Below, piece by piece: positions 2,820 to 56,110 of a stretch of DNA of 64,000 nucleotides. Under the pieces are notes generated by a model, which saw only the letters and a list, made by a program, of their open reading frames with translations, made no database searches and had not been told where the DNA came from. Position 1 is the first letter of the stretch. Each line of letters starts with the position of its first letter. Origin of the DNA: Hydrolagus colliei (Eukaryota). The position numbers and the translations under genes were made by a program. The stretch spans positions 9,734,001 through 9,798,000 of the forward strand of contig CM068757.1 of NCBI GenBank assembly GCA_035084275.1, given 5' to 3'.

Positions 2820-2919
2820 ATGTTGAGGGGGACAAACTCGGCTATAATGTCCTCACCCGGTGGACCTGCCAGGGCGCTGACCCTCGTCCTGATCCTCGGG
2901 GCTTGGATTGCAGGATCAG
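2820..2919 (+). CDS. Gene 1 exon 1, signal peptide
   Basis: [33 protein letters not shown], hydrophobic core, donor CAG|GTACAG, phase 1. Confidence 0.8.
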
Positions 2920-16642: not shown

Positions 16643-18179
16643 TCTGACGTCCGCCATATGGACGGTTCGTGAGGAGTGTGGGATGGCCAGTTGTTACACA
16701 CAAGACACATTCCACTGCATGTTCGCAACATACACAGTCATCATCATCATGGCTTTCGATTCTGACAACCACAACGTGAATATTGATCAACTTTGTCAGT
16801 CGCTGAAGAGCGATCAAAAATGTGTCAGTTTAGCAGAAATATAAAGAATCGCTGTGTAATGGTAATCTGTTAAGAGATAAAGTGCTCTGCATCTGTCTGT
16901 TATCAAAACGCTCACACACTAGATCTGTTTCTCATTAAGGTGCTTCGGTTGAATGTTTCTCAGATTCCTGCCCTGAGTCAGTCAGTAGAAAGTTTCCCAA
17001 ACCATGCTATCCATCAAACCCATGCTATCCATCAAACCCAAATCCTGCAAACCCATAGACTGCGATTGTGAAGTGGGCACAGTGCTGTCCAGGGACATGC
17101 TGCCAGGTTGTCGATGGATCTGGCTTTGTGACTGTGGCTTCCTGAGCGCAAACCCTGTTGCCATGGGGAAAGGTCCCGATTCCAGGCTGAGACCTTCTGA
17201 CCTGTAAGAGAAGGTGTTTCAGCCCCTCTCACTATCCCAGGACAACAAGCCCAATTGGTGCACCCAATTGCTGCCCTGTTTGCAATCAGTGGATTCAGCC
17301 CTCACCAGGAAGTGTGGCCTCCTTGTCTGTGTGTTTCAGGCTGTACTTTCACTCAAAGGCTGTAGGAAAATGAACATTTTTGAAACAGACGATGGGTGCA
17401 ACTGAAATCTGTCAAAATTAAATGCATTTTGTCATTCCAACACTACAATAAATATTTATATTGTTTACAACCTTAATCTGTCTGTGATTTTTTTTCAAGC
17501 ATATTTGTATATTCTGCATATCATTGTTGCTAAAGTTTAAACTACATCTGACGGTCCCACTGAAGACTTTTCTAACTCACTCCTGGTCTTCCTAGCTCCA
17601 TAATTCACGAACTGCAACCCAAACACTCAACACATTAATCACTTACTACCTCACAGTACACTCTGTTATTAAACAGTTGCACAGTCGTCGTTTCCCAGAT
17701 TCATATCAACATATATACTGTATACATATACAGTATATATAAAATACATTTAAAGTAATAAATGCCCATATATGAATAAAAACACAGTCCAATTTATCTG
17801 TACGACATCATTTTATTAGGTCATTCCATGGTATTGAATGGTTTTAGGAATTAAAACAAGCATACATTTTATTTTGTTTCATAGTTTGTCACATGTCGCT
17901 TATAATTGTATGAAAGCTGAAAGGGTTAAGAAAAATTGCTCGCTTTACAGGGCCTGGGAACCCTGCTGGGGTTTATATTCCATGACTGTTTGTGGGACAC
18001 CACTGTGCACAATTTGGCTGCCGCATTTTGCCCACAAATAGTAAATTTTCCTACTCTTCTTCGTCCTGTCCCTAACCCTCCCCTCCCTGCTCTTGTACAA
18101 TGCCTTGGGACGTCCTCATGACATGAAAGACGCTATATAAATGTAAGTTTTGACTGATTGATTGATTGATTGAAAAAGT

Positions 18180-18490
18180 CCCATCAATCAAGACCCTCAA
18201 CTGTCCTTCCTACTCCACATCAGTGCCATGAACCGCTCTGCCTTCTCCCACCTCCTCAACATCGCCAGGCTTTGCCATTTCTTCACTCCTCAGGCCGGTG
18301 AAACCCCTCATTCACATGTACATCTTATCTAGGCTTGACTACGCCAATACCCTGTTTGTCGGCCTTCCGAACTCTTCCCTTCACAAGCTGCCGATCACAC
18401 AGAAACTCTGCAACCTGTGTCCTCTCCCTCACCAGGCTCTGTGACCCTATTGCCCTCATTCTCGCCAGGCTCCACAAAGGCACTATATCA
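18180..18490 (+). mobile_element. Degenerate L2 ORF2 3' fragment
   Basis: tctaggcttgactacgccaatacc (SRLDYAN)...gccaggctccac (ARLH), typical of the L2 C-terminus. Confidence 0.65.
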
Positions 18491-19104
18491 AATACGAGGA
18501 TTACGATTATTATTGGAGGTAAGGAGGTGCCAGGGATTGAAATGATTTAAAAACGATTGTGAGAATCTTGAAAGTGATCAATTCTGGCGTCGCATTTCTG
18601 TGAAGTGCTTTGAGACGTCTAGAATACATGAAAGGTGTTACATCAAATGCAAGGATCATTATTAATTGGCAATAGGGCGCCACACCAGGACTTGTGTGAT
18701 CATGTATGGAGTTTAATACAGGTGAGTACGTGGGTGAGTTTTGGATCAGCTGGATTTTGTGAATAGTGGATCTGGGGAGGAAGGCAAGGAGGGGATTTGA
18801 GTACCAGGATTGCAAAAATTATTCTCATCATCAATAATAACAATTTGGTCGCTCAATCCACGCCTGTTTGTGGGGCACTGCTGTGCACCATAGGCTGCCT
18901 CGGTTGGCCCACAAAAAAAAAGAGCTTTGAGGCATCTGGACGATGTGATGAGGTTCAATATCAAATGCGAGGATTATTATAACAATCACTACAGTGTGAA
19001 GAATATTATTATTATTATAAAAAGCGCTACAATTAATAAACAGTTGACCAGTGAAGCGCTTTCACACACTATATTTCCCTGCTGCTGCTCTTTTCCTTTT
19101 CCCA

Positions 19105-21403
19105 GTTCAACAGGTTTCTGTAGGTGAGCATCTAGGGAATAGTGACCACAATATCGTTAGATTCAGAATAATTATGGAAAGGGATAAGGAACGATCACAG
19201 GTGAGGACACTCAACTGGAAAAGGGCTAATTTCAATGAGTTGAGGTAGGACCTAGCCAAGGTGGATTGGAAAGAAAGATTGGCAGGTAAGACAACTTAAC
19301 GAGCAGTGGGCAGTGTTCAAAGAGGAGATAGTTCAGGCACAGGTCAAAAGCATCCCCACAAAGGTGAAATGTAAGGCATCCAAACCTCCCTGGATGACTA
19401 AGGAAATCGGGGCCAAAATAAACCAAAAAAAAGAGGCTTATGATAAGTGTCAGGCTCAAAATTCAGAAGGGAACCAAGCAGAATATAGGAAGTGTAGGAT
19501 AGAACTAAAAAAGGAAGTTAGAGGGGCAAAGAGACTGCATGAAAAACAATTAGCGAGTAAGATTAAGAGGAACCCTAAGGTTTTTTACCAACATATTAAG
19601 AGTAAAAGGTTGGTCAAGGATAGGGTGGGGCCAATTAGGGACCTAGGAGGAAATCTCATTGTGGAGGCAGAGGGCATGGCTGATGCACTGAATGAGTACT
19701 TCGCCTCTGTCTTCACAAAAGTAAAGGATACAGCCAATGCCATGGTATTGGAGGAGAGGGTAGGAGAAATGGATAGAATAATTATAACCAGAGAGGAAGT
19801 TCTAAAAAGGTTGACGTCGCTCAAGGTGGATAAGTCACCTGGTCCGGATGGGATGCACCCTAGGTTACTAAGGGAGGCACGGGAGCAAATAGCAGGGACT
19901 CTGGCCACGATCTTTCAATCTTCCTTGGACACAGGGGTCGTGCCAGAGGACTGGAGGATAGCTAATGTTACTCCCTTGTATAAAAAGGGGCAGAAGGACA
20001 AGCCTGGTAACTACAGACCAGTCAGTCTAACGTCGGTAGTGGGCAAACTTCTAGAGTCCATAATCAGGGACAAGGTAGATCTTCACTTAGAAAGATATAG
20101 GCTAATAAAGGACAGTCAACATGGATTTGTTAAAGGCAAATCTTGCCTTACAAATCTGATAGAATTTTTTGATGAGGTAACGGAATGGGTGGATAATGGT
20201 AGCGCAGTTGATGTAGTTTACATGGACTTTCAAAAGGCATTTGACAAAGTGCCCATGAGACTTATTAGGAAATTAAAGGCCCATGGCGTAAAAGGGACAG
20301 TGGCAGCGTGGATCCACAACTGGCTGCGAGACAGAAAGCAGAGAGTTGTAGTGAGCGGCTGTTTTTCAGACTGGAGGGAAGTGAGCAGTGATGTGCCACA
20401 GGGATCGGTTTTGGGACCATTGCTGTTTGTAATCTACATCAATGATCTGGACTTGGGTGTACGGAGTACAGTTTCCAAGTTTGCAGATGACACTAAGTTA
20501 GGGAGAATAGTAAATAGTGAGGAGGATAGTAGCCATCTGCAAGAGGATATAGACAAATTGGTAAAGTGGGCAGACACATGGCAGATGAAGTTTAATGCAG
20601 AGAAGTGTGAGGTGATGCATTTTGGGAGAAGAAATGAAGGGAGGCAATATAGGCTAGATAGTACAATTTTAAATGGTGTGAAGGAACAGAGAGACCTGGG
20701 GATTTGTGTTAGTGACTCGTTGAAGGTGGCAGGACAGGTAGACAAGGCTGTTAAGAAGGCATATGGGATACTAGGCTTTATAAATAGGGGTATAGAGTAC
20801 AAAATCAGGAAGTGCTGACTAACCTCTATAAGACTTTGGTGAGGCCTCAGCTGGAATACTGTGTTCAATTCTGGTCACCACATTACAGAAAGGATGTGAA
20901 GACATTGGAAAGGGTACAAAGAAGATTTACTAGGATGGTGCCAGGATTGAGGGACTTCAGCTATGAGGAGAGGCTAGATAGGCTAGGGTTATTCTCTCTG
21001 GAGCAGAGAAGATTAAGGGGAGACCTATTAGAGGTTTATAAGATCATGAGGGGTTTCGACAGGGCAAATAGAGAAAAACTATTTCCACTCGTGGGCGAAT
21101 CTGTGACTCGTGGTCACAGATTTAAAATAGTTTCAAAGCGAAGTGGAGGGGAGCTGAGGAGAATTTTTTTCACTCAGCGAGTTGTTCGAATCTGGAATGC
21201 ATTGCCTGAAAAGGTGGTGGAGGCTGATTCGATAACAACTTTTAAAAGGGAATTAGATCTTTATTTAGGGAGAACAGGTCTATTAGGCTATGGGGAGCGG
21301 GCAGGGCAGTGGGATTGAATCGCTCTTTTCAAAGAGCCGGCATAGACTAGATGGGCCGAATGGCCTCCTTTTGTGCCGTAAAATTCAATGAATCTATCTA
21401 TGA
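19105..21403 (+). mobile_element. CR1-clade LINE, 5'-truncated, near-intact RT region with one frameshift
   Basis: VSVGEHLGNSDHN start; 501 aa ORF with [51 protein letters not shown]; ORF resumes 20812-21318; tail aattcaatgaatctatctatga. 1-bp deletion near 20803 relative to the copy at 53864-54624. Confidence 0.95.
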
Positions 21404-21489
21404 AAAAAAATGACGATAACTCGGGATCTGTGTTCGCAGCTTAAAGCTAATCTGCTGTGAATGCAATAATAGCGTTAAACACCATCCCT

Positions 21490-21498
21490 TTCCGAGAA
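21490..21498 (+). promoter_or_regulatory. GAS (STAT) element of gene 2
   Basis: TTCCGAGAA within TTTCCGAGAAA. Confidence 0.65.
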
Positions 21499-21510
21499 AT
21501 CATACACGAG

Positions 21511-21524
21511 AGTGAAAGTGAAAG
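21511..21524 (+). promoter_or_regulatory. ISRE/IRF-E of gene 2
   Basis: AGTGAAAGTGAAAG ~68 bp upstream of ATG. Confidence 0.8.
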
Positions 21525-21591
21525 CACAGCCCCAGTCAGTGCGGCTGGAAGCTGGAGAGAGAGAGAGAGACACACACACAGAGAGACAGAC

Positions 21592-24500
21592 ATGTTGAGG
21601 GGGACAAACTCGGCTATAATGTCCTCACCCGGTGGAGCTGCCAGGGCGCTGACCCTCGTCCTGATCCTCGGGGCTTGGATTGCAGGATCAGGTACAGAAA
21701 ATGCGCAAACGTTAGACTGATTTGCTGCTGGATCCCACCGCTGAGCGAGACACAGAGACACACCGCTAACTGGAGGCTGCCCTGGGGGGGGGGGGGGGGG
21801 GAGCACAGCCGGAAGGGTCTGTGTTTGGGGTTTAGCTGATAAACAGCGAGCGGTGGAAGCAGAGAAGCCAGAGAAGCGTCAGGGTATTTTGGGGTTGGTA
21901 CATCTGGCGGCCCGCGGGCCAATGTCACTCCTCTACCCCCACCCTCCCCCTCATTTCCCTGTCGCCCTCCCCCCCCCACCCCTCCCTCCCTATCCCAGGA
22001 ACGTGATGTTTCTGGAAGCCAAACACTAAATTGTTGCTTGTGTGGCCCGCAGACGTTTCCCAAATGAGGGCATCTTGTCCTCCTCAGCATTAAACAACAA
22101 CAACAACTTCGATTTATACAGCGCCCTCCACGCCAGACGGCGTCTCAGAGCGCCTTAAAGGGGTATTCACCATGAAGGAACTTTGGTGGGGGCTGAACGC
22201 AAAGGGTCGCCCTTATCCCACCCTGCAGAAAACATTAACAACTCATCTCCGCAGACTTAACTAACGCTTCGTGTTTTCGTTTCCAACCCGAGGATGATTG
22301 AAAGAATACGAAAGCAGGTTATAATAGATAATGCAACACGCAGCGTCCTTAAAAGTTATCTGCAATCTTTTGTGGAACATGCCTTGAACGGTGTCTTCTT
22401 GGTGACTCCTGAGAAAAAATTGCCATTTTACTACAAGGGAATGACAATTTGCTGCTGGGGAATTTTTGAAATGGCTGCTGGGAAAATCCCCAGCACTTTA
22501 TATGTTAAAAGTTTAACAGTTAAACCAACGCCCTGCTGTGCGCTGGCGGTGAGGACTTTAACTCGGTGTTGCACAACTCTCCACAGTCAGCGCAAATTGC
22601 ATTGTTGTGATGTATTGCATACAATATCAAGTTGTAGTGAAGCAGATACATTGGAAAGATTGAGGAGCCTCAGTCATGGAAACCCAATCTTGTGACTGGC
22701 TGCCTCGCCAGCCTGAGAGAAGCCGTCGCTTCCTCCACTGCTGCCTAGTGGCGGTGTTTAGGTATGGAATCAACAGTGTAACACCATTGGAATACATTAT
22801 CCTCGCATTTCATTTAATGCCTTATCAAGATGTCTCCAGCTTTTCGCGCTCGCGTTGTTACAGAGTCGCCTAAGATTAAGATGCCGTTTGTTCCTTCGAA
22901 CTGTGCTTTTGGTCATCAACACAATTCTGCAAAAAGGCAACGCAACATTTGTTCCAGTTGGATTTCAGGAGCTTCATATGTACAACAAAACGACAACAAA
23001 ATGACACTTGTAGAGCTCCTTTCACATCAGGGGGATGTCCCAAGGCGCTGACTTTGTATGAGACTTTGTAAAGGATTGTGTACAGTATAAGTAAATCCAG
23101 ATCAATGCGTTCAGATAAATAAATGCAACAGGATTCCGGGTTACGAGTAAAGGAGCACAATTTCACTTGAGACTAGATAGAAGTTTTTATTTAACGCAGA
23201 TTATAATCGATGACTGAATTGGGTTACCAGGTAGGGTGATGGGTGAGGTAAGAATAATTGGCTCATTTAAAAAAATTAAGTGCCGGGAGGGTGGGAAGAT
23301 AGTTGTATTGGAGGGTTGAAATTAGCCGAAGGGTCCTCTTCTTCATCCAAACCTCTCTTGTGATTTAAGATTATGACTTATTGTAATTTAAGATTAAGTT
23401 ATAAAAGTACGTTTATCATCTCCACAGCTCAGCCAAATGTCAGCTTGTCTCCACAACACATCGTTATCACCAATGGCTCGGCGGGCTTTCTGAGATGTAA
23501 AGCAACTGGAAATGTTCCTCAGGATACCGTAATCAAATGGATCAAGGTATCAGGTGATGGGGAGACAGAGATTAATTCCTCAGATTTCGGCACTGCGTTT
23601 ATAGATGCCAACAGTGTTTCCAGCCAGTTGAGGATCAGACCAACCATGGACGATGATGGCAATAAGTACAGGTGTGTCGTGACATACACCCCATCCAATA
23701 CTGTTATTGCACAAGAGGCAAAGCTGACTGTGGAGGAACCCACTCTACCATGGCCAATTATTGGAGGTGTCATTGGTGGAGTATCGTTGATAGTGTTGAT
23801 TATATTAGTACCTTGCATCTGCTGCCGCCGGAAACAAACTGAAGAATTTAAGAAAGAAAGAGGTAAGATTTGGTTATTCGATTATAAATGGTGTGGTAAT
23901 ATCTCTTGCCTTAAACAATCAGTAGATGAAATGTCCATATGAAGGCAAAAGGGGGCCGAAAATGTTTTGGTTTCCAACTGGGTTCCTTCCAATGGAAACT
24001 GAGCAAGGATGAACTCCTTCCAGTAACCAAACGGTGTCTTCTAGGATCTGCTGACAGGTAGGCGTCCTGTGAATCAGAGTGACTTTATGCAGATGTATTA
24101 TCTGTGAGAAACACTGAAACAGATTAAAGATTCTATGTATGGGTATTGTCTGTGTTACCAATGGATGATGTTATGCAGATAAGAAATAGTTGAGGCCAAA
24201 GGATGGGATGTGATGTAAAAGGCGCTATACAAATGTAATTTTGTTGTAGTTGTTACAGCAATTGCCTCAGTGAACACCAGCGAGGACTAAACAGAAATGG
24301 GATGAAAAGCTGTTGGGAGAAATTTAGTGTAGATATTTGACTGGGACTATTACAGTTGGGAACCTTAGTGATATACCCCACACCAGAGTCTGTTGATGAA
24401 TATGAGGTGCAGTCAACTTTCTCATTACTATTTACTGTACTACTATGAGTGATTGCGTGGACCTCCTTAACTTGTTTCCCAGCACAAACCTGTGCTGCAA

Positions 24501-27500
24501 GTCACCTAACATCAGACAATAGGGACCTGATATTCCTTCTCCTGTTTCACACATGTGACAAGTGAAAGAAATTGACCCAACATGGACAACATATATATGA
24601 GGGGATCAATGCTGTATTAGGCTTTCACTGAACACATTCTGCACCATAATGCAGCTATATAATAATAATCATCCTTGCATTTGATGTAGCACCTTATCAC
24701 GTCTTTGAGTCGTCTCAAAGCGCTTCCCATAATATACTGTAAAGTGAATTGACTGTATAGTGTGACACTGGCAAAACTCGGCAGCAAATTGCGCAACAAA
24801 TTATTATTCTTTTGAAGGGATTATTACCTCTGGAAAAGTGACCCACCAATCGACTAACAACTGTGTTCCTACTTATTGATGGGTGAACAATGGGTGTGGG
24901 GTAATGGATCTTGCCACACGTGTGCAGCTGGAAAACGGGGTTGAAGTTGCGATATTTCTTAATGGAATTTCCTAGTACGAAATCAATATGGCCAAATGGG
25001 ATTTCCTTCCAAGACCCTTGATGTCTGTCACACCAAACCAGAGGAATGCTCCAATATGGAGTTATTCCAGGGTAGAGTTATCACAGGTCAATTGGAATTC
25101 TAATGGAACCCCTTAAGGTACACCACAAATTAGAAACTAATATCGCACGTGAGAGATGTAAAATGAAATGTGCGATTTTGTTCTAATTCCCTTATAGGTT
25201 CTCCTCAGATCAATCTATTGACTAAACAAGACCAGTTTAAGGATGGTGTGGCGTCTCGTATAAAATGGGAAGTTACTGGGTTCACTCCCCGGAACATATC
25301 CATTGCTTTATTATTGAGAAGAAAAGGAGAAGAATTTCAGAAATTATATGATTGGAATTTGATAAATAATGAAAACCTAGAGAATGGCGAGAAAGGTCTT
25401 CTCTTAAACTCGTCAAGTGTACAGGATTGGAATAAGAAAGAAGACTCCATTACTGCTGAAATCTCCAATTGCATTCAGTTGAAGGATGGCACGTTCAACG
25501 TGAAGTGCACGATAACAGTCCGTCCTGATGCACCCAGGGATGACGGAGCTGAAGTCTCACTGGAAGTTCACCATGATACCCTTAAGACGCCGCTCACTTC
25601 ATCATTTAAGTTAGTCATTGAAAGAGGTAAGGATTATGATCTGCATTCCTCTCTCACCAAACAAAAAACCACATGTGGAAACATAGAATCATAGAAATTT
25701 CACAAAAGGGACAAATACTGGTTATCTAATTCCACAGTATATTTGACCCAGATTGTCCATGGTGTAGGTTTGGGATCCTCAGAGTGTTCTTGAGATCTTT
25801 GAGATAAATTCTACAGATTAACTTGCTATTCGGAGCACTGACTCTCAGCTAGTTGTGATGGTACAGTATTGACATGTCCTAATGCCAACTCCCAAATGGG
25901 CTCTGTTGTATTATCTGTGAAAACCATTTGCCCTTCAGTTACCCAAATACACTTTCTGAGGTCCCATTTGGTTGAAGTGCTGCAGTGGACTTCATAATTT
26001 GCATTTATTGCGGCTTGGTATATTGCCATCTGTGGTGTAGATATACGACAAGGACTAATAGAGTTGGGAACCTCAGTGATATACTCTACACCAGGGTCTG
26101 TTGATGAACATGAGATGCAGTCAACTTTCTGATTACTATTAATCACTGTGAGCGATTGTGTGGAACTCCTTAACCTGTTTCCCAGATGTGACAAGTGTCT
26201 GAATGAAATTGATCCAAGATGGATTTTATTGTCCATAAACACAGAATTGTATATGAGGGGATGACTGCTGTATTAGTCTTTCACTAAACAAATTCTGCCC
26301 CCTAATGCAGCTATATAATAATAATCATACTTGCATTTGATGTAACACATTTTCACTCCTGTGAAGCGCTTTGAAACGTCTAGAAGATGTGAAAAGCGCA
26401 ATATCAAATGCAAGGATTATTATTATTATCTCAAAGTGCCCAACAGAATATACTGTAAAGTGGATTGACTCAATAGTGTGACACTGGTGAAATGTGGCAG
26501 CCAACACAACAACAAAATTGCACTTATATAGCGCCTTTCATGTCGGGAGGATGTCCCAAAGCACTGAAATAGTGCACCAAATTTTTTTTTTTGGTAGAGA
26601 TTATTACCTCTGGAAAAGTGATCTGCTGATCGATTGACATCTGTGTTCCTACTTGCTGCTGGGGGAATAGTGAGTGTGGAGTAAGGGAACGTGCCCAATG
26701 TGTGCAGCTGGAACACTGGGTAGAATTTGTGATATTTCTCAATGGAATTTCCTGGTAAGATATCAATGATGGCCAAATGGGGTTTCGTTCCACGAGCCTT
26801 GATGTCTGTCACATCAAACCAGAGGAATACTCCAAAACGGGCTTATTCCGGGGTAGAGTTATCACAGGTCATTTGGAATTCTAATAGAATCCCTTAAGGT
26901 ACGCCACAAGTTAGAACCCAATATTGCACTTGAGAGTCTTGAAATGTCTGATTTTATTCAAATTCCTTTGTAGTTTCTCCTCAGATCAATATATTGACCA
27001 AACCCGACCACGTTAAGGATTGTGTGGCGTCTCACATAGCTTGGGAAGTTACTGGGTTCACCCCCCGGAACATAGCCATAGCTTTGTTTGTGAGGAGAAA
27101 AGGAGAAGAATCACAGAAATTATATGATTGGAATTTGATAAATAATGAAGACCCACTAAAGAATGGCGAGAAAGATCTTCTCTTAAACTCGTCATGTGTA
27201 CAGGATGGGAATAAGAAAGAAGACTCCATTACTGCTGAAATCTCCAACTGGATTCAGTTGGAGGATGGGACATTCAGCGTGAAGTGCATGATAACAGTTT
27301 GTCCTGATGCATCCAGGGATGACGGAGCTGAGGTCTCACTGGAAGTTCACCATGAGACCCTTAAGACGCCGCTCACTTCATCATTTAAGTTAATCATTAA
27401 AAGAGGTAAGGATTGTGTTCTGCATCCCTCTCCCACCAAACAAAACCCACATGTGGAAACATAGAATCATAGAAATTACACCAAAGAGACAAACAGAATA

Positions 27501-30500
27501 TTTGACCCAGATTTTCCAGAGTGTAGGTTTGGGATCCTCAGAGTGTTCTTTGAGATAAATCCTACAGATTAACTTGCTATTCAGAGCACTGTCTCTCAGG
27601 TAGTTGTGGTGGTACAGTATTGACATGTCCTGATGCCAAATCCCAAATGTGTGTGGGGTAAAGGATCTTGCCACACGTGTGCAGCTGGAAAACGGGGTTG
27701 AAGTTGCGATATATCTCAATGGAATTTCCTAGTACAAAATCAGTGATGGCCAAATGGGGTTTCCTTCCACGACCCTTGATGTCTGTCACACCAAACCAGA
27801 GGAATGCTCCAATATGGAGTTATTCCAGGGTAGAGTTATCACAGGTCAATTGGAATTCTAATCAAACCCCTTAAGGTATGTGACAAATTAGAACCCAATA
27901 TCTCGCGTCAGAGACTTAAAATGAAATGTCTGATATTATTCTAATTCCTTTTTAGTTTCTCCTCTGATCAATTTATTGACCAAATCCAACCACGTTAAGC
28001 ATGGTGTGGCGTCTCATATAGCCTGGGAAGTTACTGGGTTCACCCCCCGGAACATAGCCATTGCTTTGTCCGTGAAGAGAAAGCAAAAAGAATCACAGAA
28101 AATATATCATTGGAATTTGAAAAATAATGAAGACCTACTCTTAAACTCGTCTTGTGTACAAGATGGGAATAAGAAAGAAGATTCCATTACTGCTGAAATC
28201 TCCAACCGCGTTCAGTTGGAGGATGGGATGTTCAGCGTGAAGTGCACGATAACAGTCTGTCCTGATGCATCTGAGGATGACGGAGCTGAAGTCACACTAG
28301 ACGTTTACCAAGAGACCATTAAGAAGAGGATGAATTCAGTGGTGAAGTTAGTCGTTGAAGGAGGTAAGGATTGCGCTCTGCATCCGACTCCCATGCAGTA
28401 ACATAAAACCATAGAAATTACACCACAGGGACACACACTATGTATCTAATTTCAGAGAATATTGAGCACAGATTGTCCAGAGCGTAGGTTTGGGATCTTC
28501 ATAGTGTTCGTTGGGTTAACTCCTACAAATGAACTTGCTATTCGGAGCACTGTCTCTCAGGCAGTTGTGATGGTACAGTATTGCCATGTCCTGATGCCAA
28601 AGCCCAAATGGGCTCTATTGGATTGACAATCAGTATTATCTGAGAAGACCATTTGCCAGTAGTTACCCAAATGCACATTCTGGAGCCCCTTTTGGTTGAA
28701 GTACTGCTGTGGAGTATGTAATTTGCATCTGTCTCAGCTTGGTATATTACCATCAAGTCTCTAGGAATTCTATAGTGCGCTCCTTTGGGTTCATTATTAC
28801 CAGGCTTACCTTGTGATGTCTGTTTTATAGTTCCTCCTGCAGTGACTGAAATTGACATGTGGCCCGAGGTTAAACATAGTGAAGTGGCCAGTCTGAGTTG
28901 GTCAGTCATCGGGTTTGCTCCAAAGCCCATTTCCATTATTTTCTTTCTGAAGAGGAAAGCGGATCAGAAAACAAAGAAGCTGTTTCACTGGCAGATCTCA
29001 GAAAAGGGAGGAATAGATGATGAACCAAAGATGGGGAGCACTGCTCTCAAAGATGTAAGGGAGCAATGTGAGGAAGATGATATCATCACTGCTGTGACAC
29101 CCCACTGTGTGAGGAAGAACGATGGAACGTTCTGTGTAAACTGCAGCATTTGGATGACTGCTGATATGTGCAGGGATGATGGAGCTGAATTAATCATCGA
29201 AGTCTTTCACAAAGCTCTTGAGATCCCTCTCAAGACATGTATGACATTACACGTTACAGGAGGTAAGAGCTGCATTCATGTATGTGTGTTGACGTGTATT
29301 CTGAAGAGTATAGTTTGCACAGTAAAACCTCGATAATCCAGCATTCCGAAAGCCGGCAGTTCCCTAAAACCAGCAAGATTTCAAAATATGTGCAGTATTA
29401 GATTCATTTCCGATGTCGGCAAATCTCCTGAAGTTTAGAGCAGCAGCTTGGAGTCACGGTGTCGCCACTCTGTCAACCGGCGCTGTGGATGGAGCTCGGG
29501 GCATTGTTTTCTTTCAGTGCTATGTTTACAGCACACGTGGTATCTGTGGCGACTCATTCCCAGCCATTACTAGGTAGGTTTCTAAATACCGACAAACTCC
29601 AAAATCTGGGAAGTGCATGGGCCCAACTCTGCTGGTTTAGCGAACATATGCACATAATGAGTGACCATATCATTATTTTCGATAAAAAAAATTTGAAGGG
29701 ATTATTATCCTTGGATAAGCGATCGACTAATTGACTAGTCGGGTTCCTGCTTACCGCTACAGAGCCGTGTGAAGTGAGGAAACTTGCGAAATGTTTTGCC
29801 CTGCCCAGGAATCGAAATAGGGTCCCCTTGAGACAAGATGAGTTTGAGATTACTTTGACGTTTGGGGTTAGCAATTGCCTGGTTGAGCCACAAATAAGGA
29901 GACACCAATAATGTTTTCCACATAAAGACCGATAAAGAACATGCAGAATGAGATGATTTATTTTCAAATGTGCTTGTATCACAAAGTGACATGTTACAGA
30001 ATGACAGCACAGTGTCCATTTAACACGCTTATTTCTGTTTTCTAGTTCCTCCCACAATCACTGAAATCAAGAAACCCCCTGAGATCACTCCCGGGGAGTT
30101 GGCCAGCCTGAGCTGGGCAATTGTTGGCTTCAGTCCACAGGCCATCAACATTGTTACCTTTGTGAAGAGGAAAGGGGAGAAGGTGAAAAAGAAAGTCTGT
30201 CATTGGCGGATCCCAAAGAAAGACAAGGAATCTCAGGAAGCTAAGACAGCCAGTGTTCCCCTCGACAATGTCGCAGAAGGTTGTGAGGAAGATGGCTCCT
30301 TCACTGCCGTGACGCCCCACTATGTGCAGAAGAATAATGGGACGTTCAGTGTAAACTGCAGTGTTTGGTTGTGTGCTGACGCATCTCAGGATGATGGAGC
30401 TGAATTAATGGTTGAAGTTTACCATGAGGCCCTCAAAGAGCCTCTCATTAAGTCTAAAACATTACATGTTACAGGTAAGTTCTGCCTCTGAACGGTGTCC

Positions 30501-31455
30501 TCACCATCTCTCATGCATCGCTCCAGTGTTTACCTTATGATTCTAACAGGATTGATGGATATGCTGAATGTGAAGATGCCCCTGTATTGTCATTGCAGGC
30601 AGAATGTCAGTGATGGCTTCCCATTATTATTTCTGCGTCTTCATATCTTTCGCTATTCTATTATGCAGAAACTTACTGATAAATATACTGATGGACAGAT
30701 GGACTGACCGACATGCACGCACGCACGCACCTACGCATGCATGCACTCATGCACCTCTCTCGGTTGCTTACACATCCACTCACTCTCTATGAATATCTGA
30801 CACTCACTATCTCTAACTCACTATCTCAATAAAATAACTTGCATTTATATAGCAGTCTTCATGCAAGGTAGTGTTCCAGAGTGTTTAATCCGTGTCTTGT
30901 ACACTCATATACAATCACACATATGCATACCCTCTATTGTTCACTCATTCCCTCTCTCCAACTCACACACTCTTTTACCCGCTTGTTCCATTCCTCACAT
31001 ACACACATACTCACACACCGACATACATCCTGTCATACATGGACATCAGGATTTAACATTCAGAAACCCGACAACTTATTCAGTGTATTTGTTAAATAAT
31101 AATAGTAATAATGCTTGCATTTGATATAGTGTCTTATCACTTTGTTGAGACATTGCAAAGCACATCACAGAATATATGAAACGTTGATTGTCCAGCGCGT
31201 TAGGACGTCCTCTTTACGTGAAAGATGCTGTACAAGTGTAAGTTTGATTGTTGATATTGTAAAGTGAATTGACTATACATTTTGTGTGTGAAACACGGCA
31301 GCCCACTTGTGCACAGCAGTATTCCACAAACAGCGATAAAATTATTTTTCTCATAATGTGAAACAGAAGTTGGTGAGATCTGTTTGTGGATTGCACTATG
31401 TTGTTTAGGTGATTAATATATTCAAATTTTCTTTGGTTTAGATGGTGGAAATTAA
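21592..31455 (+). CDS. Gene 2: V-less paralog, leader-C1-TM plus 5 predicted cytoplasmic Cys-less C1-like domains, ~892 aa
   Basis: Exons 21592-21691, 23428-23862, 25198-25626, 26974-27405, 27956-28363, 28831-29262, 30046-30474, 31442-31455. All GT-AG, phase 1; total 2679 nt, open. Confidence 0.8.
23428..23862 (+). CDS. Gene 2 IgC1 plus TM exon
   Basis: AQPNVSLSP...LRCKATG...IKW...DDDGNKYRCVV, then WPIIGGVIGGVSLIVLIILVPCICC-RRK; 435 nt. Confidence 0.88.
25198..25626 (+). CDS. Gene 2 post-TM C1-like domain 1
   Basis: IKWEVTGFTP...LYDW...TFNVKCTI...DDGAEVSLEVHH; 429 nt. Confidence 0.85.
26974..27405 (+). CDS. Gene 2 post-TM C1-like domain 2
   Basis: IAWEVTGFTP...TFSVKCMI...DDGAEVSLEVHH; 432 nt. 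Confidence 0.85.
27956..28363 (+). CDS. Gene 2 post-TM C1-like domain 3
   Basis: IAWEVTGFTP...MFSVKCTI...DDGAEVTLDVYQ; 408 nt. Confidence 0.85.
28831..29262 (+). CDS. Gene 2 post-TM C1-like domain 4
   Basis: LSWSVIGFAP...LFHW...TFCVNCSI...DDGAELIIEVFH; 432 nt. Confidence 0.85.
30046..30474 (+). CDS. Gene 2 post-TM C1-like domain 5
   Basis: LSWAIVGFSP...TFSVNCSV...DDGAELMVEVYH; 429 nt. Confidence 0.85.
31442..31455 (+). CDS. Gene 2 terminal coding exon (D)GGN*
   Basis: Acceptor tttag|AT homologous to genes 0 and 1; followed by the shared ggctttcgattctgacaaccacaac UTR motif. Confidence 0.6.
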
Positions 31456-32494
31456 GTTTGAGTCTTCGAGCCGCCAAGCAGATGATGATGTTTGAGGAGA
31501 ACGTATTTGCGAGTCTCTGCTCTGTACGACACATCCACAGAGTATTCGCAACAGCCACAGTCATCATCAAGGCTTTCGATTCTGACAACCACAACATTGA
31601 TCAGCTTTTGTCAGTTGGTGATCAGTGATTAGCGCTGTGTCATCTTTCTAGAATTATAGAGAATATGCTGTGACGATTTTGACACATGACATTTTTCTAC
31701 AATAATCAACAATAGATGTGTTTTTTCAGATGTTATTATCACAAGTATATTTTGGGGTGCTTGATAACAACAACAAAATTACAATCGTATGCTGCCTTTC
31801 AATATTGCTTGGCTCATGGGAATTTGATTATTCTACTTGTTAAGTAGAATGCCGGGATACCTAATGAGTCTAATAAAAATAACAGCTAATGTACTGAATC
31901 TTGTTGAAACTAATGGTATAAAATCTAACAAATTTTGAGACATGAAAAACATTGTTTTGTGATTGATTGAGATGTTCAGGAGGTAGAAAGATAGCTACTT
32001 GGGAAGTAAACTGTTGAGAGTGGAGTCTGTGGAATCTTGTAACTCAGTGGTTAGAGCACTTGTCTCTCAGGCAAGAAACCAGGGTTTGATTACCAGCAGG
32101 GCAAAATCTTGAGCAAGTTTCCTTACTCCACATGCCTGATAATAATGTTGTACCTTAAGAATAAAAACAATAATAAATTGAAATTTGTGCAAGACTTTTT
32201 CAATATAGATATTTCAGATGGCTGCCAATATTTCCCTCCTATCTTTATACTTCTCCACCAATTATTTACCATTCCTCCTATGTAGTTATCACAATAATAA
32301 CAATTTACCTTTACATTACACCTTGGGAGAATGTCTCAAGGCACTTCACACAAACAATTGGAAGCTCAAATGGGAGAAGTTGAGGAGGAGGTGAGGGTGC
32401 AGTAGTTGAGGAGGATGGGGAATCAGACCGGGACAATGAAGCAGGCTGTTGCCAGAGCCCGCTGAATGGAGGGGACGGACAGGCTAATAGGGAG

Positions 32495-32900
32495 ACAGCA
32501 ACAACAACAACAACTTAGATTTGCATAGCGCCTTCCACGTTGGATGGCTTCTCAGAGCGCTTCTGAGATCGGAAAGATAGGCGGGGGCAAGACCGTGAAT
32601 GGCCTTGAAAGTGAGGATGAGGATATTGAATTCGATCCACTTGGGGATGGGGAACCAGTGGAGACGGGGGAGGGTGGGAGTGATGTGGTCACGGAGCCTA
32701 GTGCAGGAGAGTACACGAGCTGCAGAGTTCTGAATAATCTGCAGCTTGCGAATGGAGGAGTTGGGAAGGCCGACGAGGAGAGAGTTCCCGTAGTCAAACT
32801 TTGATGTGATGAATGCATGGACGAGTGTTTCGGCAGCATGAGGCATGGGGGGTGAGGAGATCTCAGGTTCCACCTCAAAATATTCCCTAACTGTTGTGTT
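32495..32900 (-). mobile_element. L2 LINE 3' fragment
   Basis: AAETLVHAFITSKFDYGNSLLVGLP...LHWFPI...KAIHGLAPAYLSDL; (CAA)n tail near 32500. Confidence 0.85.
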
Positions 32901-34839
32901 CGGCCAATCTTTCCCTCCTATCTTTATATTTATCCACCAGCCTTGCCTACTCCAAAGCAAAACCTTTTTACATGTGATGGGTCATCCTGGTGTCTCCTGA
33001 TTCTTGGTGGTCCTTGCCCTGTTTTTCATTAGCCCTTTTCTTATCTTGACTAGCAGAGTGGCTCTTAAACATTCCTGTTTTCTCAAAGTATCTTATTGTA
33101 AAACACCTCCCCATTTTCCCAGGCATTCTGACCAGCTTTCTCTCTTGCCTTGTGACTCCTTAGCCCGTGAGAAGACATCGAGTAGCTTGACTGATGTATT
33201 TAACTGAATATGTTTTTCTGCCTTTGTCCTTCAACTTATCATGTCTACAAGAGCTAATGCCAGCCAAGCTACATTCCCGTCTTTTACAGACAGGGCTGAT
33301 TTCTGCAAGTTCTTAATTATTTTAAGATGCTAAATAGCACTGTGTGGTTCTGTTGTACACATCCTGCAAAGACTGTTACTTTTCTAAGTAACATAAAGAA
33401 AGTTATGTAACACTTATACCAATAATATTAATGCCATATTGCCATATATATATTTTTTAATTATTGCAAGTGGAGCAGGGCGAAGGTGTGGGATTTGGGC
33501 TTGTGGAACCTGGTGCATTGGAGGAAACAAACAGTAGAATTTTAGATTGCACTGTTTGCAGTGACTGCAATTTATGTTGTAATGGACTTATTCAAAGGAT
33601 GAATGAGAATCATTCCTATGGATAAATGAATCTACTTTAAGTGCCTTCACATGTGTGGCAACTATGGAGTTACATAGGTTAATGTAGCTAGAGATAATTA
33701 TATATTGTTGCATATTTTCTCAACACTTTATTGCTCAAATCCACTGGCATAGCTTGCACTATCTGACAAGCTTTTCCACTGCTTGTCCAGCTGGGACAAC
33801 CATACCCGATAACGCTTTGGATTGCTGAGTGCAAAGAATCCCTGAGTGCAAAGAATCCCTAACTCCAGTGATTGGTTTTCCCTTCCAAATCCTGCCAATA
33901 AGCATTAGCAATGCACTGGAGTACTGTGGACTCTTGTAATTTGACATTGATCCATGTAATTTCACATCGGTCCAGTAGAGTTCTAACATTTTGTTAGAAG
34001 ACCATTGCTGAGGCAGTATTGAGGCAATAAAGAAACCACCTGTACATACTGCAGTGTAATCAGGCAGAATGGGTTTGATGCTGACACTAGGCGATGCAAC
34101 AAAAAATAGGTACTAAATGTTGTACTTTAATGATCCAGCAAAAAACATTATTGTGTTGTGTAGATCGTATGGTATTGAGCTCAAACTTGCTTTCTGTTTT
34201 TGGGTTTCCATTCTGAGAGTACCATCTGCTTTTCGATCAACACTCTTGCAGAAAACGCCTTTCAACGGGGATGTTAAAAAAAAATTAAATTGATCATTAA
34301 CTTTATGGCTGTGAGACAAGATTAGCTGCTGCCATGGCCAACTCAACACACAATCACTCCCCTTTGCAGAAGCCTCTGGCGCAATGATAGCAAACTCAAA
34401 TCCAAGGATTATTATATTACTATTGTTATCATCTGAAAACAGAGCACCGTGAATTCACTGCAAGGTCCTGGTGGACTGGAGCCAAGCCAGAGAAGGATCT
34501 TTGTTATTTATCAAAAACCTTTGGACTTCGATCTCAGCCAATTTCAGTTGTCGGTTTTAAATTGATTACGTGCACGGTAAAGTGCACCTCATGTGTTTTG
34601 GTTTGGGTGTGATACCAAGCTGGTGCATTCACCCTGGTGTTTAACTGCAACTTTTCCATTTCCCAGTTAAGACAATTCGATTCAAAAGTAAATGTTAAAA
34701 CTAGATTTTGGGGAAAAACATTTGGCTACGTGGCTCCTCGGCTGTGCTAATGTTTGAATTCCGTTCCGAATAAGGACTTGATTGTGAACTTATACTTACA
34801 TTCGGTTAAAATCCTGGCTTTTCAAAAAGGGTGTGGAGC

Positions 34840-34862
34840 AGTGAAAGTGAAAGGGTGATTTC
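34840..34862 (+). promoter_or_regulatory. ISRE plus abutting kB-like site of gene 3
   Basis: AGTGAAAGTGAAAG overlapping GGGTGATTTCC, ~80 bp upstream of ATG. The kB call is weaker than the ISRE call. Confidence 0.7.
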
Positions 34863-34932
34863 CATGTACAAGTAGTGGGATAATCAGAGCAAGTCATTTT
34901 ATTTAAAAAATCCTGCTTCTGTGGAGGGAAGG

Positions 34933-37900
34933 ATGGCGATTCTTGCTTTGTGTGTTGTCGCTGTCTCCTTTATCTCAACATCAGGTAAGCAACTTTGAGC
35001 CCATCTCTTTCTCGTCCTCAAACCTGGGTTGGTTGTAAAATACGAGCAGAGGAACCACTCAGCTTCTCTCCAGCCTCTGTTGCATTTTCCATTCTCTACC
35101 TATTGTTTCTTTCAAAATAGAAATCTTTTATTTTCATCAATCAATTTCGCAAATGTCTAAAGTTACCATTGTAATTTTGGAAGTTGCTATAAATGTAAAC
35201 GACATAACCACGAAAGAGTAAGCAGCCTTTATAGCAAACTACCTATCGTTTGGCATTAATGGAGGGGCTAAATCTACTCTATTCGTGGAATATAGTAGGA
35301 ATCCTTGTATTTGACATTATATATAATCCTTGCATTTGATATGGTGTGCTATCATGTCTCCTAGACACCTCAAAGGGCTTCACAGAAAATACTGTAAAGA
35401 GAATTGCTGTGGATTAAGAGACCAAATTTTTTTAAAAAAATTTAAAGGGATTATAATCCCCACAAAAGTGATCTGCCAATTGACTAACAATCGGGTTTCT
35501 ACATACACCTAAGGTAAACATTTCAGATTGTCCAAAATTTGGCAGAATCTTGAATTTACTCTTAACTTTGAAGTTGGGTTTCTGTAATTCTTCAAGTAAA
35601 CTTGCATAAAAATGAGTGTATGGTGGAGTCCTGTAGTGCAATGGTTAGAGCAATTGCCTCAAAATTTGCCAAATTCTCGAAGCTCTGAAACTCTACATAC
35701 ACAGAGTGATCCTCTACATGGATGGAATACTGTACAGTCAAACCTGATTTCTACAACCCCCCAGTGGGTATTAAATAAGGATTGCTGTGCAGAGCAGCTC
35801 CAGGCTGGTTGTTGACAGGGGTTGGTTGCTGAACGGAGGTAGTTGCTTGAACAGGTTTGACTGTGTATCTCTCCTCAATACAACAAGAATAAATTACATT
35901 TGTAAAGACCACATCCCATAATGATAATGTCTCAGAATAATTTAGATCTTAACGTTTTGTACTCTAAATGCAATTAATACATTCAGCATTGACAGCTGCT
36001 TCCATTGGCTTTAGAAAGTACATGATAGATAGATGATGTGCAGGTTAAAGAGATTGTGCTTTTTCATGATTAGATGAAGCATCTTCCTGAGTAGGTGCTA
36101 GTTCATAGCAACATTTTATGAGGACGCGCAGAATACAATAGAGCAGTGTTCACCAACCTGTGACCTCTCTCCGAGCCAGGTGGTGGCTCGTAGAACACCC
36201 ACCACAGTCCAGGCAACTCTGCACCAAATTAATGCTTTGTTTTCAGTAGCTACTGAGTCCCAATACACATGGCACAGCCATAAATGAAAACAAATTCAAT
36301 AAAGCAAAACGAAATTGGTAGGCTGACCGTAAATGATGGAGAGCAATGCTGTATAGAGGAGCTGGTAGGCTGAGGAACAATGAGTCAACCAACATCCTTA
36401 GTTCTCTCATCTTATCACTTGCCTTGTTCTATCCCATCCAAAGAGTACTTTTGTTTCCTGTTCTTGCTTCCTGTGTACAGTATGTTGCATTTATCTGTAT
36501 TGATAAGAATTTGATGGACATGGTCAGGATATAACTTCATTTAATTCCTTTTTTTTTTCCAAATTAGCATTGGAAATGACGTTATTCAACAGTCCAATGA
36601 AAAGGCAAGTGAATGAGAACGTAGTCCTGGAATGCAAGGTGTCTGGTTACCTGGGCGGACAGATTAACCTCAAAATGGTAGGAGTTACGTGGTCTTTTGG
36701 GCCTAGCAAGAAACACGTGTATTCATATGCTGCAGGAAAAGCTTCTGTATACCGAAACAAGGCAAATATTTCTGAAGAGAATTTAAGGACAGGAGATGCC
36801 TCATTGTATCTCTCTAACATACAAATTGAGGAAGAAGGAGATTACACATGTTCGGTGATCGTAACCCCAGACAAAGTAGAAAAGACATCCACACTCCAAG
36901 TGTCAGGTAAGGGTCAACAATGCTCCATATTAAACATATTATAATGGGGAGAAATCCCACTTGATTCTAGAATTACTCTATTCATGTATATTTTCAGCAT
37001 CCAGAATTTGGCAAATGGTTGAATTGCGTGTTCACTCTGAAACTTTTTTTTTCATGGTTTTGTGGAAACATACAGAAATTAAGGTACAGTATTTAAGAAT
37101 TTGGGGGTGGAATGGCAAGTATATAGGGACTCCCTGGCATTGACATTGGCTCCAAGGTGATGTGTTGATGACGGAATGTTGGAATTGGGGCAATGGCGAT
37201 CATGGTCGTCTGGTTCCTGAGTTTGAACCCACTTTCTATATGAGTACTTTCTCACTCATGGATGAGAGTGCCAACTGAGCCTGGGTGATAATTAGGAAGA
37301 TGTGAATTGGAATACAGCTTGTAATGTGTGGAGTCCTGTAGCGCATTGATTAGAGCAATTGCCTCGCAGGCAGGAGGACCCAGGCTTGATTCATGGGCAA
37401 AGCCAAATGTTAGGCAAGATTGCTTACTTCACACGCCTCTGTTCACCTAGCAGTAAATTGGTACCCAGTTGTTAGTCGATCAGTGGATCGCTTATCTGGG
37501 GGTAATAATCCCTTTTAAAAAAAATGTAGCCACTCAATCCACGACTGTTTGTGGGACACTGCTGTGTTCAATTGACAGCCATGTTTGACCCACAAAATAC
37601 AGTCAATTTATTTTATAGTATATTCTGTGAAGTGCTTCAAAACATCTCAAAGATGGGATAAGGCGCTATATCTAATGCAAGTATTATTACTACTGTTATT
37701 ATTATGCCCCTCTGAAATGGCTTCCCAACTTTTCATTCCTCTTCTTTGCAGCCCAGCCAAATGTAATCCTGTTGCCACAGCCTTTTACAGTTCTTCTTGG
37801 TTCAACAACATTTGTGAAATGTAGTGCTACTGGATTTTACCCTCAGGAACTCGAAATCATCTGGTACAAGATATCACACGAGAAAACGCAAAACATTTCA

Positions 37901-53379: not shown

Positions 53380-53863
53380 TGAAAAACTCTCTTCTTTCCC
53401 AAAAAATAAGCACAGAAATTGATCAATGCTCTCATCCTTTCCAATTATAAAAAAAACTTTTATTCAAGAATACTAATAGAATACTATAAATTTATGTACA
53501 TTATATATACAGTATATGTTAGATACAATTGAAAAGCATGACCTAAACCTTTCCAGATGAATTCACCTGATGCTGCATAATTCACAAAGTTTGTTTGTTG
53601 GATAATTGTTGGATAATCTGCATAATTCACAAAGCTTATTTGTTGGATCACATTTGTCTGTAAAACTAATCATGTACATGTAGCAATAACTACCATCAAG
53701 CACTGTCCAAGAAATGTTAATGTTGATTTTTTTTATTGCTTTTTTTATTTTCAATAAAGGCTTAAATATTGTGCTTTTCAGAGCAAGCTTGAAAATGAAT
53801 AGGGTTTATTATTAAATGTTGTGAATCTTATTTTTTCTTACTCTTTTCAGAAATTGTAGCATT

Positions 53864-54624
53864 ATAGAATCATAGAATTTTACGGCACAAAAGGAGGCCA
53901 TTCGGCCCATCTAGTCTGTGCCGGCTCTTTGAAAAGAGCGATTCAATCCCACTGCCCTGCCCGCTCCCCATAGCCTAATAGACCCGTTCTCCCTAAATAA
54001 AGATCTAATTCCCTTTTAAAAGTTGTTATCGAATCAGCCTCCACCACCTTTTCAGGCAATGCATTCCAGATTTGAACAACTCGCTGATTGAAAAAATTTC
54101 TCCTCAGCTCCCCTCTACTTCGCCTTGAAACTATTTTAAATCTGTGACCACGAGTCACAGATTCACCCACGAGTGGAAATAGTTTTTCTCTATTTGCCCT
54201 GTCGAAACCCCTCATGATCTTATAAACCTCTATTAGGTCTCCCCTCAATCTTCTCTGCTCCAGAGAGAATAACCCTAGCCTATCTAGCCTCTCCTCATAG
54301 CTGAAGTCCCTCAATCCTGGCACCATCCTAGTAAATCTTTGTTGTACCCTTTCCAATGCCTTCACATCCTTTCTGTAGTGTGGTGACCAGAATTGAACAC
54401 AGTATTCCAGCTGAGGCCTCACCAAAGTCCTATAGAGGTTAGTCAGCACTTCCTGACTTTTGCACTCTGTACCCCTATTTATAAAGCCTAGTATCCCATA
54501 TGCCTTCTTAACAGCCTTGTCTACCTGTCCTGCCACCTTCAACGAGTCACTAACACAAATCCCCAGGTCTCTCTGTTCCTTTACACCATTTAAAATTGTA
54601 CTATCTAGCCTATATTGCCTCCCT
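53864..54624 (-). mobile_element. CR1 LINE, 5'-truncated copy of the same family as 19105-21403
   Basis: 199 aa C-terminal ORF2 nearly identical to the 20700-21318 translation; tail ttctatgattcta on the minus strand. Confidence 0.92.
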
Positions 54625-56087: not shown

Positions 56088-56110
56088 AGTGAAAGTGAAA
56101 GGGTGATTTC
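56088..56110 (+). promoter_or_regulatory. ISRE plus abutting kB-like site of gene 4
   Basis: AGTGAAAGTGAAAGGGTGATTTCC, identical to gene 3. Confidence 0.7.

Follow-up and report, generated by a model that had tools for sequence, protein, structure and literature searches.

Introduction

B7-H6 (NCR3LG1) is a cell-surface ligand whose variable (V) immunoglobulin (Ig) domain is read by NKp30, a receptor of natural killer (NK) cells. In the human protein, the V domain contacts NKp30 (PDB 3pv6). The tail of human B7-H6 behind the membrane is a Gag-like sequence and is not known to contain Ig domains. Here we describe a relative of B7-H6 that has no V domain and that has five Ig-like domains behind its transmembrane (TM) segment. 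This gene (gene 2) is the second of four co-oriented immunoglobulin superfamily (IgSF) genes on the + strand of a 64,000-nucleotide stretch of vertebrate DNA from the chimaera Hydrolagus colliei (positions 9,734,001 to 9,798,000 of contig CM068757.1, assembly GCA_035084275.1). We refer to the whole stretch as the window. We think, with a probability of roughly 0.6, that gene 2 is an intact, selected, V-less gene of the B7-H6/NCR3LG1 type that most likely acts through its array of post-TM Ig-like domains.

Among known systems, B7-H6/NCR3LG1 and its non-mammalian relatives are close to gene 2. The frog and turtle NCR3LG1 proteins contain V, C1 and TM segments followed by the first of the post-TM tail domains. 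Gene 2 has the C1, TM and tail domains in common with them, but it lacks the V domain and its C1 domain has drifted. Its nearest relative is LOC103174897 of Callorhinchus milii (XP_007885698.2 / A0A4W3JET2, annotated as "uncharacterized protein"), a positional ortholog with the same plan of leader, C1+TM exon, five tail exons and C-terminal DGGN.

Two other kinds of protein resemble parts of gene 2. C1-set domains usually pair with another C1 domain, as in Ig, T cell receptors (TCR) and major histocompatibility complex (MHC) molecules. Pre-TCR alpha and, more loosely, beta2-microglobulin are like gene 2 in being V-less with a lone C-type Ig ectodomain; the layout is signal peptide, C-type Ig domain, TM segment and tail. 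Unlike gene 2, they have no Ig domains behind the membrane, and they share no sequence kinship with it. The arrays of filamin and the I-set arrays of the titin/obscurin type resemble the gene 2 tail in being tandem, disulfide-free Ig folds that serve as cytosolic scaffolds. These are soluble cytoskeletal proteins built of I-set or filamin-type domains, whereas the gene 2 tail is derived from C1 domains and belongs to a type I, membrane-tethered protein in which its cytosolic placement is predicted. We considered UrIg and UrIg2 (PMC12227049) as examples of the same architecture and rejected them; their layout is VJ-(C1)n-TM, that is, with the Ig domains before the TM segment. In the literature that we searched, we found no description of post-TM Ig arrays in B7-H6-like proteins; an earlier one may exist.

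Results

Gene 2 is V-less in two chimaeroid lineages

Gene 2 has a coding sequence of 2679 nt (892 amino acids) in which all internal exons are phase 1-1 (Table 1). A preliminary description of this DNA, made from the sequence alone, had proposed that the leader exon joins directly to the exon encoding the C1 domain and the TM segment (C1+TM exon). Both junctions are phase 1, so the join is in frame, and the splice borders are present. The same description took the five tail exons to be open and placed the end of the gene at 31455. All five have ag/gt borders, phase 1-1 and an open frame, and 31455 is the final base of the stop codon in a short terminal exon. The C-terminal DGGN encoded there is also found in C. 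milii proteins P0001, P0002 and P0003. A second in-frame ATG in the gene 2 leader, at 21619, is the counterpart of the C. milii start, and the 3' end of the gene (window 31255-32012) is 78% identical to that of the C. milii ortholog.

We found no trace of a V exon in or upstream of gene 2. The preliminary description had reported that V motifs were missing between the leader and C1, and both a motif scan and a tblastn search agreed. The six-frame scan of the gene 2 intron for G[DN]A[SA]L and D.G.Y.C gave no match. Searches with the V domains of four family members gave only noise within 21692-23427 (E 2.9-7.4) and a best E of 0.57 in the upstream region (15601-21591), and, with the same queries, each of the three genuine V exons in the window was matched at E<=1e-20. 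By self-blastn, the gene 2 intron had no DNA-level similarity to the V region of gene 1. The window contains no runs of N, so there is no assembly gap that could hide a V exon.

The V-less state is shared with C. milii. The top protein matches of gene 2 were LOC103174897 (68% identity over 99% coverage, and no V-set Pfam domain) and a V-bearing gene, LOC121850342. The window from 22184 to 40700 is collinear with the C. milii locus that holds LOC103174897 (locus L002), with intron 1, the C1+TM exon, the tail exons, the terminal exon, the 3' flank and the ortholog of gene 3 in the same order. Non-coding DNA of the window is 65-92% identical to that of C. milii (65-86% for blocks longer than 100 bp). 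In both the RefSeq and the Ensembl models of LOC103174897, the leader is spliced straight to the C1+TM exon, and neither its 2.6 kb intron nor the 4.4 kb that precede the gene held any remnant of V. Local misassembly, raised earlier as a way in which a V exon could have been missed, did not hold up, given this collinear V-less ortholog in an independently assembled genome. The V-less state of gene 2 is real and, because it is common to both genomes, older than the split of the two lineages. The earlier suggestion that the tail was retained after loss of V fits this comparison: the ortholog is V-less and the five-exon tail is open in both species.

One candidate for a V-less gene in a shark was rejected. 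Heptranchias P0025 has no V-set Pfam match, yet its first residues, MRVSAQPKV, are those encoded by the end of a V exon, and it is thus a truncated model. In addition, a V-bearing relative in C. milii, LOC103174895 (P0165, Ensembl), has a predicted isoform that skips the V exon. Since V exons and TM exons are skipped in predicted isoforms of relatives, splicing may be a further source of V-less and TM-less products in other members of the family.

A drifted C1 domain in a B7-H6-like family

The family to which gene 2 belongs is B7-H6/NCR3LG1-like, as judged by sequence and profile matches. The best PDB match to the V-C1 region of gene 1 was human B7-H6 (6yjp, 3pv6, 4zso; E ~1e-22), ahead of B7-H3 and TAPBPR. 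A profile of the tail domains matched 302 representative proteins, with E<=1e-10 for 159, and the match often started ~280-300 residues into the protein, right behind V-C1-TM. Proteins with a V-C1-TM-tail layout were found in horn shark, catshark, skate, elephant shark, coelacanth, reedfish, caecilian and frogs, and some of these are annotated as NCR3LG1. By these matches, post-TM Ig domains in this family extend from sharks to frogs and a turtle. Given the absent V domain, binding of NKp30 by the gene 2 product seems unlikely.

The C1 domain of gene 2 is atypical, as the preliminary description had noted. In an alignment with seven relatives, it alone among the eight C1 domains had GNVP in place of GFYP, VTY in place of V.H, and a strand E that lacks 5 residues at its start. 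It retains Cys23, Trp37 and Cys82. It is 64-66% identical to the C1 domains of C. milii gene-2-type genes and 40-47% identical to those of genes 1, 3 and 4. AlphaFold2 (AF2) predicted an Ig fold with a mean confidence (pLDDT) of 86.5, lowest near the strand E deletion. In contrast to gene 2, the C. milii ortholog keeps GFYP, VTH and a full-length D-E region in its C1 domain, indicating that the changes are specific to the lineage of the window.

The tail is an array of disulfide-free Ig folds

Pfam gave no match to the tail domains. We therefore relied on profile and structure comparisons. We built a profile from 24 chimaera tail domains and compared it, using hhalign, to a profile of the family's own C1 domains. 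The two matched over their full length (96.7% probability, E 3.5e-10). Each tail domain is ~140 amino acids and has ~35 extra residues between strands C and E relative to the C1 domains of the family. The AF2 model of the fifth tail domain (t5) was a seven-stranded sandwich (pLDDT 90.7, pTM 0.84), and a Foldseek search of the PDB with this model gave Ig domains for all of the top 50 matches, at a structural (TM-) score of ~0.5, including MHC II beta2, nanobodies, nectins and B7-H6.

The cysteines that form the canonical Ig disulfide have been replaced. The strand B position is Trp in 22 of the 24 domains and Cys in the other two, the strand F position is Val, Ile or Met in all 24, and there is no Trp in strand C. 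That is, none of the 24 domains has the canonical Cys(B)-Cys(F) pair. Based on the match to the C1 profile, the predicted fold and the replaced cysteines, the tail domains have an Ig fold, descend from the C1 domain of the family and lack the Ig disulfide.

The arrays of genes 1 and 2 had been described as the same. They are of the same kind, but the arrays are not identical: in a tree of the domains, the order is A-A-A-B-B' in gene 2 and A-C-C'-D-D' in gene 1. Tail domains t4 and t5 of gene 2 have 1:1 orthologs in LOC103174897, and identity between the two proteins, 68% overall, is 81% in t4-t5. In contrast, t1-t3 cluster by species. This grouping of tandem repeat units indicates concerted evolution or independent triplication. 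The t1-t3 units are in tandem at 24300-28400 of the window and at 14600-20330 of C. milii L002, and every C. milii unit contains the same LINE (long interspersed nuclear element) fragment. C. milii isoform X2 has one t1-t3-type unit fewer.

Predicted topology of the array

Several features suggest that the array is cytoplasmic. By hydropathy there is a single TM segment, with acidic residues before it and basic residues after it, predicting a single-pass type I protein. The CICC-RRK cluster of the preliminary description is present at the membrane end, and the Cys cluster is conserved in gene-2-type genes, being CCCKK or CCCRK in two C. milii relatives of this type. The one TM segment, the charges of its flanks, the Cys cluster and the missing disulfide are all consistent with a tail on the cytosolic side.

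It is also possible that the array lies outside the cell, through a secreted isoform without the TM segment or through a cleaved form, in which case gene 2 would encode a V-less secreted or luminal multi-Ig protein. This notion comes from relatives of gene 2. In Bombina (a frog), the TM segment of NCR3LG1 is a 34-amino-acid cassette exon that is present in isoform X1 and skipped in the predicted isoform X2 (P0177 vs P0037), and the turtle NCR3LG1 isoform P0005 has no TM segment. In addition, the domains beyond the first post-TM domain in coelacanth, frog and C. milii LOC103174895 are canonical Pfam C1-set domains that keep their Cys pairs. With a skippable TM segment and retained Cys pairs, the array may be extracellular in some of these relatives. 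For gene 2 we consider this rather unlikely. In gene 1, gene 2 and the C. milii ortholog, the TM segment is fused to C1 in a single exon, and a scan with a donor score matrix, which serves only as a rough filter, found no positive-scoring in-frame donor between the Ig domain and the TM segment of gene 2 that could remove it. The TM segment is also present in every predicted C. milii isoform of LOC103174897. The canonical disulfide is missing from all of the chimaera tail domains, and the conserved Cys cluster is of a kind that is palmitoylated on the cytosolic face.

The reading frame of gene 2 is protected by selection

We compared gene 2 to its C. milii ortholog by the Nei-Gojobori method and calculated dN/dS (omega) with bootstrap 95% intervals; dS was ~0.25. 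Omega was 0.52 (0.32-0.82) for t4-t5, 0.76 (0.57-1.04) for t1-t3 and 0.67 (0.52-0.87) for all tail domains together. It was 0.79 (0.42-1.80) for the TM and juxtamembrane part and 1.24 (0.64-2.74) for the Ig part of C1. That is, the tails are under purifying selection and the C1 ectodomain is not distinguishable from neutral. As baselines, omega was 1.08 for the C1+TM exon and 0.97 for t1+t2 of gene 1 (the orthology of the C. milii gene used here is less certain), and ~0.5 for V domains of the family. High omega is thus family-wide and amino-acid constraint is weak. The preliminary description had suggested that the cytoplasmic array may be the selected unit. The lower omega of the tails (0.67, vs 1.24 for C1) fits this suggestion, but the high values throughout the family, including gene 1, limit how far it can be taken.

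The open reading frame (ORF) is clearly protected by selection. The 892 codons of gene 2 offer 360 one-step routes to a stop codon, and 18-30 nonsense hits are predicted at K=0.15-0.25, for a probability of no stop under neutrality of 1e-8 to 1e-14. Where orthologous non-coding DNA could be aligned, we counted 20 gap openings per kb, which would correspond to ~54 indels in the coding sequence. We found no stop codon and no disruption of the frame; all of the coding indels were in frame. Retention of the ORF is therefore incompatible with neutrality. None of the 14 splice sites has been lost, and each of the eight exons is open. In C. milii the ortholog is likewise intact, with 895 open codons.

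These results bear on the view that gene 2 is a decaying or functionless copy from which V was deleted and whose open frame is a leftover. The omega of ~1.2 for C1, the loss of C1 hallmarks together with the strand E deletion, and the insertion of a LINE just upstream of the gene would all fit such a copy. Nonetheless, we consider it very unlikely. Frames of 892 and 895 codons have stayed open despite the divergence at synonymous sites, at odds of 1e-8 or less by chance, and omega in the tail is significantly below 1. The drifted C1 is still predicted to fold, and omega is equally high in gene 1, which has its V domain.

Gene 2 is a chimera with a shared promoter-leader module

By sequence comparison, gene 2 is a chimera: its 5' end is that of a gene-1-type gene, and the end of its intron, its C1+TM exon and its tails belong to a second type of gene. 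Its 5' part (promoter, leader and the first ~1.1 kb of the intron) is homologous to the 5' end of gene-1-type genes in both species. The last few hundred bases of the intron and the C1+TM exon are homologous, again in both species, to intron 2 and the C1+TM exon of the V-bearing LOC121850342. Within the intron, 22184-22827 aligns to intron 1 of the C. milii V-less gene, 22523-22750 aligns to intron 1 of C. milii G1y, and 23215-23427 aligns to the intron preceding the C1+TM exon in LOC121850342. The simplest notion is that the V-less form arose when, within the tandem array, intron 1 of one gene (gene-1-type) recombined with intron 2 of another (gene-2-type), or when the DNA between these two introns was deleted. 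LOC103174897 is V-less with the same chimeric 5' end at the same position, so loss of V preceded the split of the two lineages.

LOC121850342 (C. milii locus L001, 10001-15748) has its own leader and a V domain that is closer to those of genes 3 and 4 (~42% identity). It has only three tail domains, the last two of which are ~95% identical to t4 and t5 of the C. milii V-less gene, implying a recent duplication or gene conversion. We saw no counterpart of this gene in the window. LOC121850342 may be the ancestral V-bearing form, or it may be a copy specific to C. milii that gained its leader and V domain anew. A run of ~17 G (21776-21802) and a C-rich stretch of low complexity (21930-21990) lie just beyond the end of the similarity to gene 1, and they may mark the edge of a conversion tract at the start of the gene 2 intron.

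The 5' module of gene 2 is 95.6% identical over 274 bp to that of gene 1 (2690-2955). Similarly, within C. milii, the G1-type gene and the V-less gene have modules with 94% identity over 316 bp. The identity drops to ~76% between species, indicating that the modules have evolved in concert. The module contains GAAAGTGAAAG, which we take to be a site of the type known as interferon-stimulated response element (ISRE) or interferon regulatory factor (IRF) element (IRF-E). Identical copies are at 2748-2758, 21514-21524, 34843-34853 and 56091-56101, 72-105 bp upstream of all four start codons (those of genes 3 and 4 are at 34933 and 56196). Shuffled sequences gave an expectation of 1.25 matches per window, and the only additional match in the window is inside an exon. 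The core of the motif is conserved in the C. milii 5' modules. The shared site suggests joint IRF or interferon control of the cluster, gene 2 included.

A CR1-like LINE with reverse-transcriptase ORFs ends 57 bp upstream of the 5' module and 195 bp upstream of the gene 2 ATG, and it cuts off the older upstream sequence. Its 3' end (20638-21397) is 97% identical to 53864-54624 on the - strand, indicating that the element was recently active.

A V domain supplied in trans, by read-through splicing of the gene 1 leader and V exons to the C1+TM exon of gene 2, is barely credible: the two genes are adjacent (5 kb) and co-oriented, and with all of their exons in phase 1-1 any join between them would be in frame, but in both species the V-less gene starts with a conserved promoter-leader module of its own that carries an ISRE-like site, gene 1 has a terminal exon with a stop codon (16623-16643), a 2 kb LINE lies between the genes, and the C. 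milii database models begin at the local leader.

Neighboring genes and coordinates

Gene 1 spans 2820-16643; behind its leader come the V exon (4418-4759) and the C1+TM exon (7605-8054), and then five tail exons and a terminal exon. The terminal exon is a homolog of that of gene 2 with a 1-bp indel, as a result of which gene 1 ends in DVEIFA-stop instead of DGGN-stop. We searched the window for the C-terminus of the C. milii G1-type protein, GESASRQTQHSGRFK, and found only noise. The V exon of gene 3 is at 36564-36905 and that of gene 4 at 58061-58402; both genes also have C1 exons and long runs of acidic exons. Downstream of gene 3 is a tandem array with a period of ~1.88 kb (43650-53400), whose units contain short acidic exons (e.g., ...ETTGENIDEISVAETQSDKDKDLEIRKEAGEKENDEPEE...) and a segment derived from a SINE (short interspersed nuclear element) or LINE on the opposite strand. 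A shorter, similar set of acidic exons follows gene 4 (62490-63230). The tails of these genes are thus of a different kind than those of genes 1 and 2.

Table 1. Features of gene 2 and its upstream region in the window.
Feature	Position	Strand	Details
CR1-like LINE copy	19256-21397	+	reverse-transcriptase ORFs
5' module (proximal promoter, 5' untranslated region (UTR), leader exon, first 36 bp of intron)	21454-21727	+	by self-blastn and alignment
ISRE/IRF-E-like motif GAAAGTGAAAG	21514-21524	+	78 bp upstream of gene 2 ATG
Leader exon	21592-21691	+	33 residues plus 1 base; donor phase 1, G/gtacag; hydrophobic signal-type segment
Intron in V-exon position	21692-23427	+	single, gap-free, ~1.7 kb
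C1+TM exon	23428-23862	+	acceptor ccacag/CT, phase 1
Drifted C1-set Ig domain	~23430-23738	+	Pfam C1-set, 33.1 bits (cutoff 21)
Predicted TM helix	23751-23825	+	sole TM segment by hydropathy, residues 139-170
CICC cluster	23814-23825	+	followed by basic juxtamembrane stretch; CICC-RRK is residues 163-169
Tail Ig-like domain t1, type A	25198-25626	+	open, phase 1-1, ag/gt borders; in one cluster with t2 and t3
Tail Ig-like domain t2, type A	26974-27405	+	open, phase 1-1, ag/gt borders
Tail Ig-like domain t3, type A	27956-28363	+	open, phase 1-1; in-frame 9-codon deletion
Tail Ig-like domain t4, type B	28831-29262	+	open, phase 1-1; 1:1 ortholog of C. milii t4, 77% amino acid identity
Tail Ig-like domain t5, type B'	30046-30474	+	open, phase 1-1; 1:1 ortholog of C. 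milii t5, 84% amino acid identity
Terminal coding exon	31442-31455	+	(G)AT GGT GGA AAT TAA, DGGN-stop; sole such site in window
Probable 3' UTR	31456-31877	+	up to AATAAA at 31872-31877; putative poly(A) site, by direct reading of the sequence

Discussion

Our results indicate that gene 2 has been without a V domain since before the H. colliei and C. milii lineages split and that its reading frame has been kept open by selection. As predicted, its 892-amino-acid product would have a signal peptide, the drifted C1 domain, one TM segment ending in CICC-RRK, five domains with an Ig fold, and DGGN at the C-terminus. It would be a type I protein with its five tail domains in the cytoplasm. Without V, the usual receptor-binding face could not be presented, and the protein would most likely work through its post-TM array, as a scaffold or regulatory subunit that is tethered to the membrane and may be palmitoylated. 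Because genes 1 and 2 carry the same ISRE-bearing promoter module, gene 2 is probably induced together with gene 1. It is possible that the product associates with V-bearing relatives through its C1 domain or its tail domains. The preliminary description had proposed that gene 2 may be a co-receptor, a dominant regulator or a ligand-independent scaffold for gene 1; the one observation in favor of such putative roles is the promoter-leader module that both genes have in common (95.6% identity), with its ISRE-like site.

Several observations weigh against a functional V-less gene that works through its inner array. The C. milii gene models are predictions. The skipped or missing TM segments of the frog and turtle isoforms, and the canonical, disulfide-retaining tail domains of the coelacanth, frog and C. 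milii LOC103174895, suggest that the array is extracellular, at least in such relatives. The C1 domain has lost GFYP, V.H and part of strand E, and its best sequence matches in the PDB are I-set domains (receptor protein tyrosine phosphatase (RPTP) sigma, 1e-7), with C1 domains at only ~3e-3. Selection on the protein is weak, and the intervals of omega for both C1 and t1-t3 are compatible with neutrality. Lastly, the young LINE so close to the ATG may have cost the gene upstream regulatory DNA. We still favor the reading in which the retained value of gene 2 most likely lies in the membrane-tethered Ig-like array, and in which this array probably has a function in its own right.

A broader view is that cartilaginous fish have B7-H6-like receptors with cytoplasmic, disulfide-free, C1-derived arrays, that gene 2 has consisted of a vestigial ectodomain, a TM segment and such an array since before the split from Callorhinchus, and that the array works autonomously as a module for signalling or scaffolding, of a kind undescribed for immune receptors. 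We offer this only tentatively, and doubt that all of its parts will hold.

B7-H6 is known as a ligand that NKp30 reads through its V domain. Here, a relative lacks that domain in two chimaeroid lineages and is nevertheless intact, and constraint is strongest on two of the Ig-like domains that follow the TM segment. Gene 2 is thus a natural deletion experiment that separates the function of the post-TM array from ligand recognition, and through it the role of post-TM Ig domains becomes testable, by way of topology, binding partners and induction by interferon. It also illustrates how a V-less receptor chain may arise, by intron-to-intron recombination of tandem paralogs, with a promoter-leader module that is kept matched to that of its neighbor.

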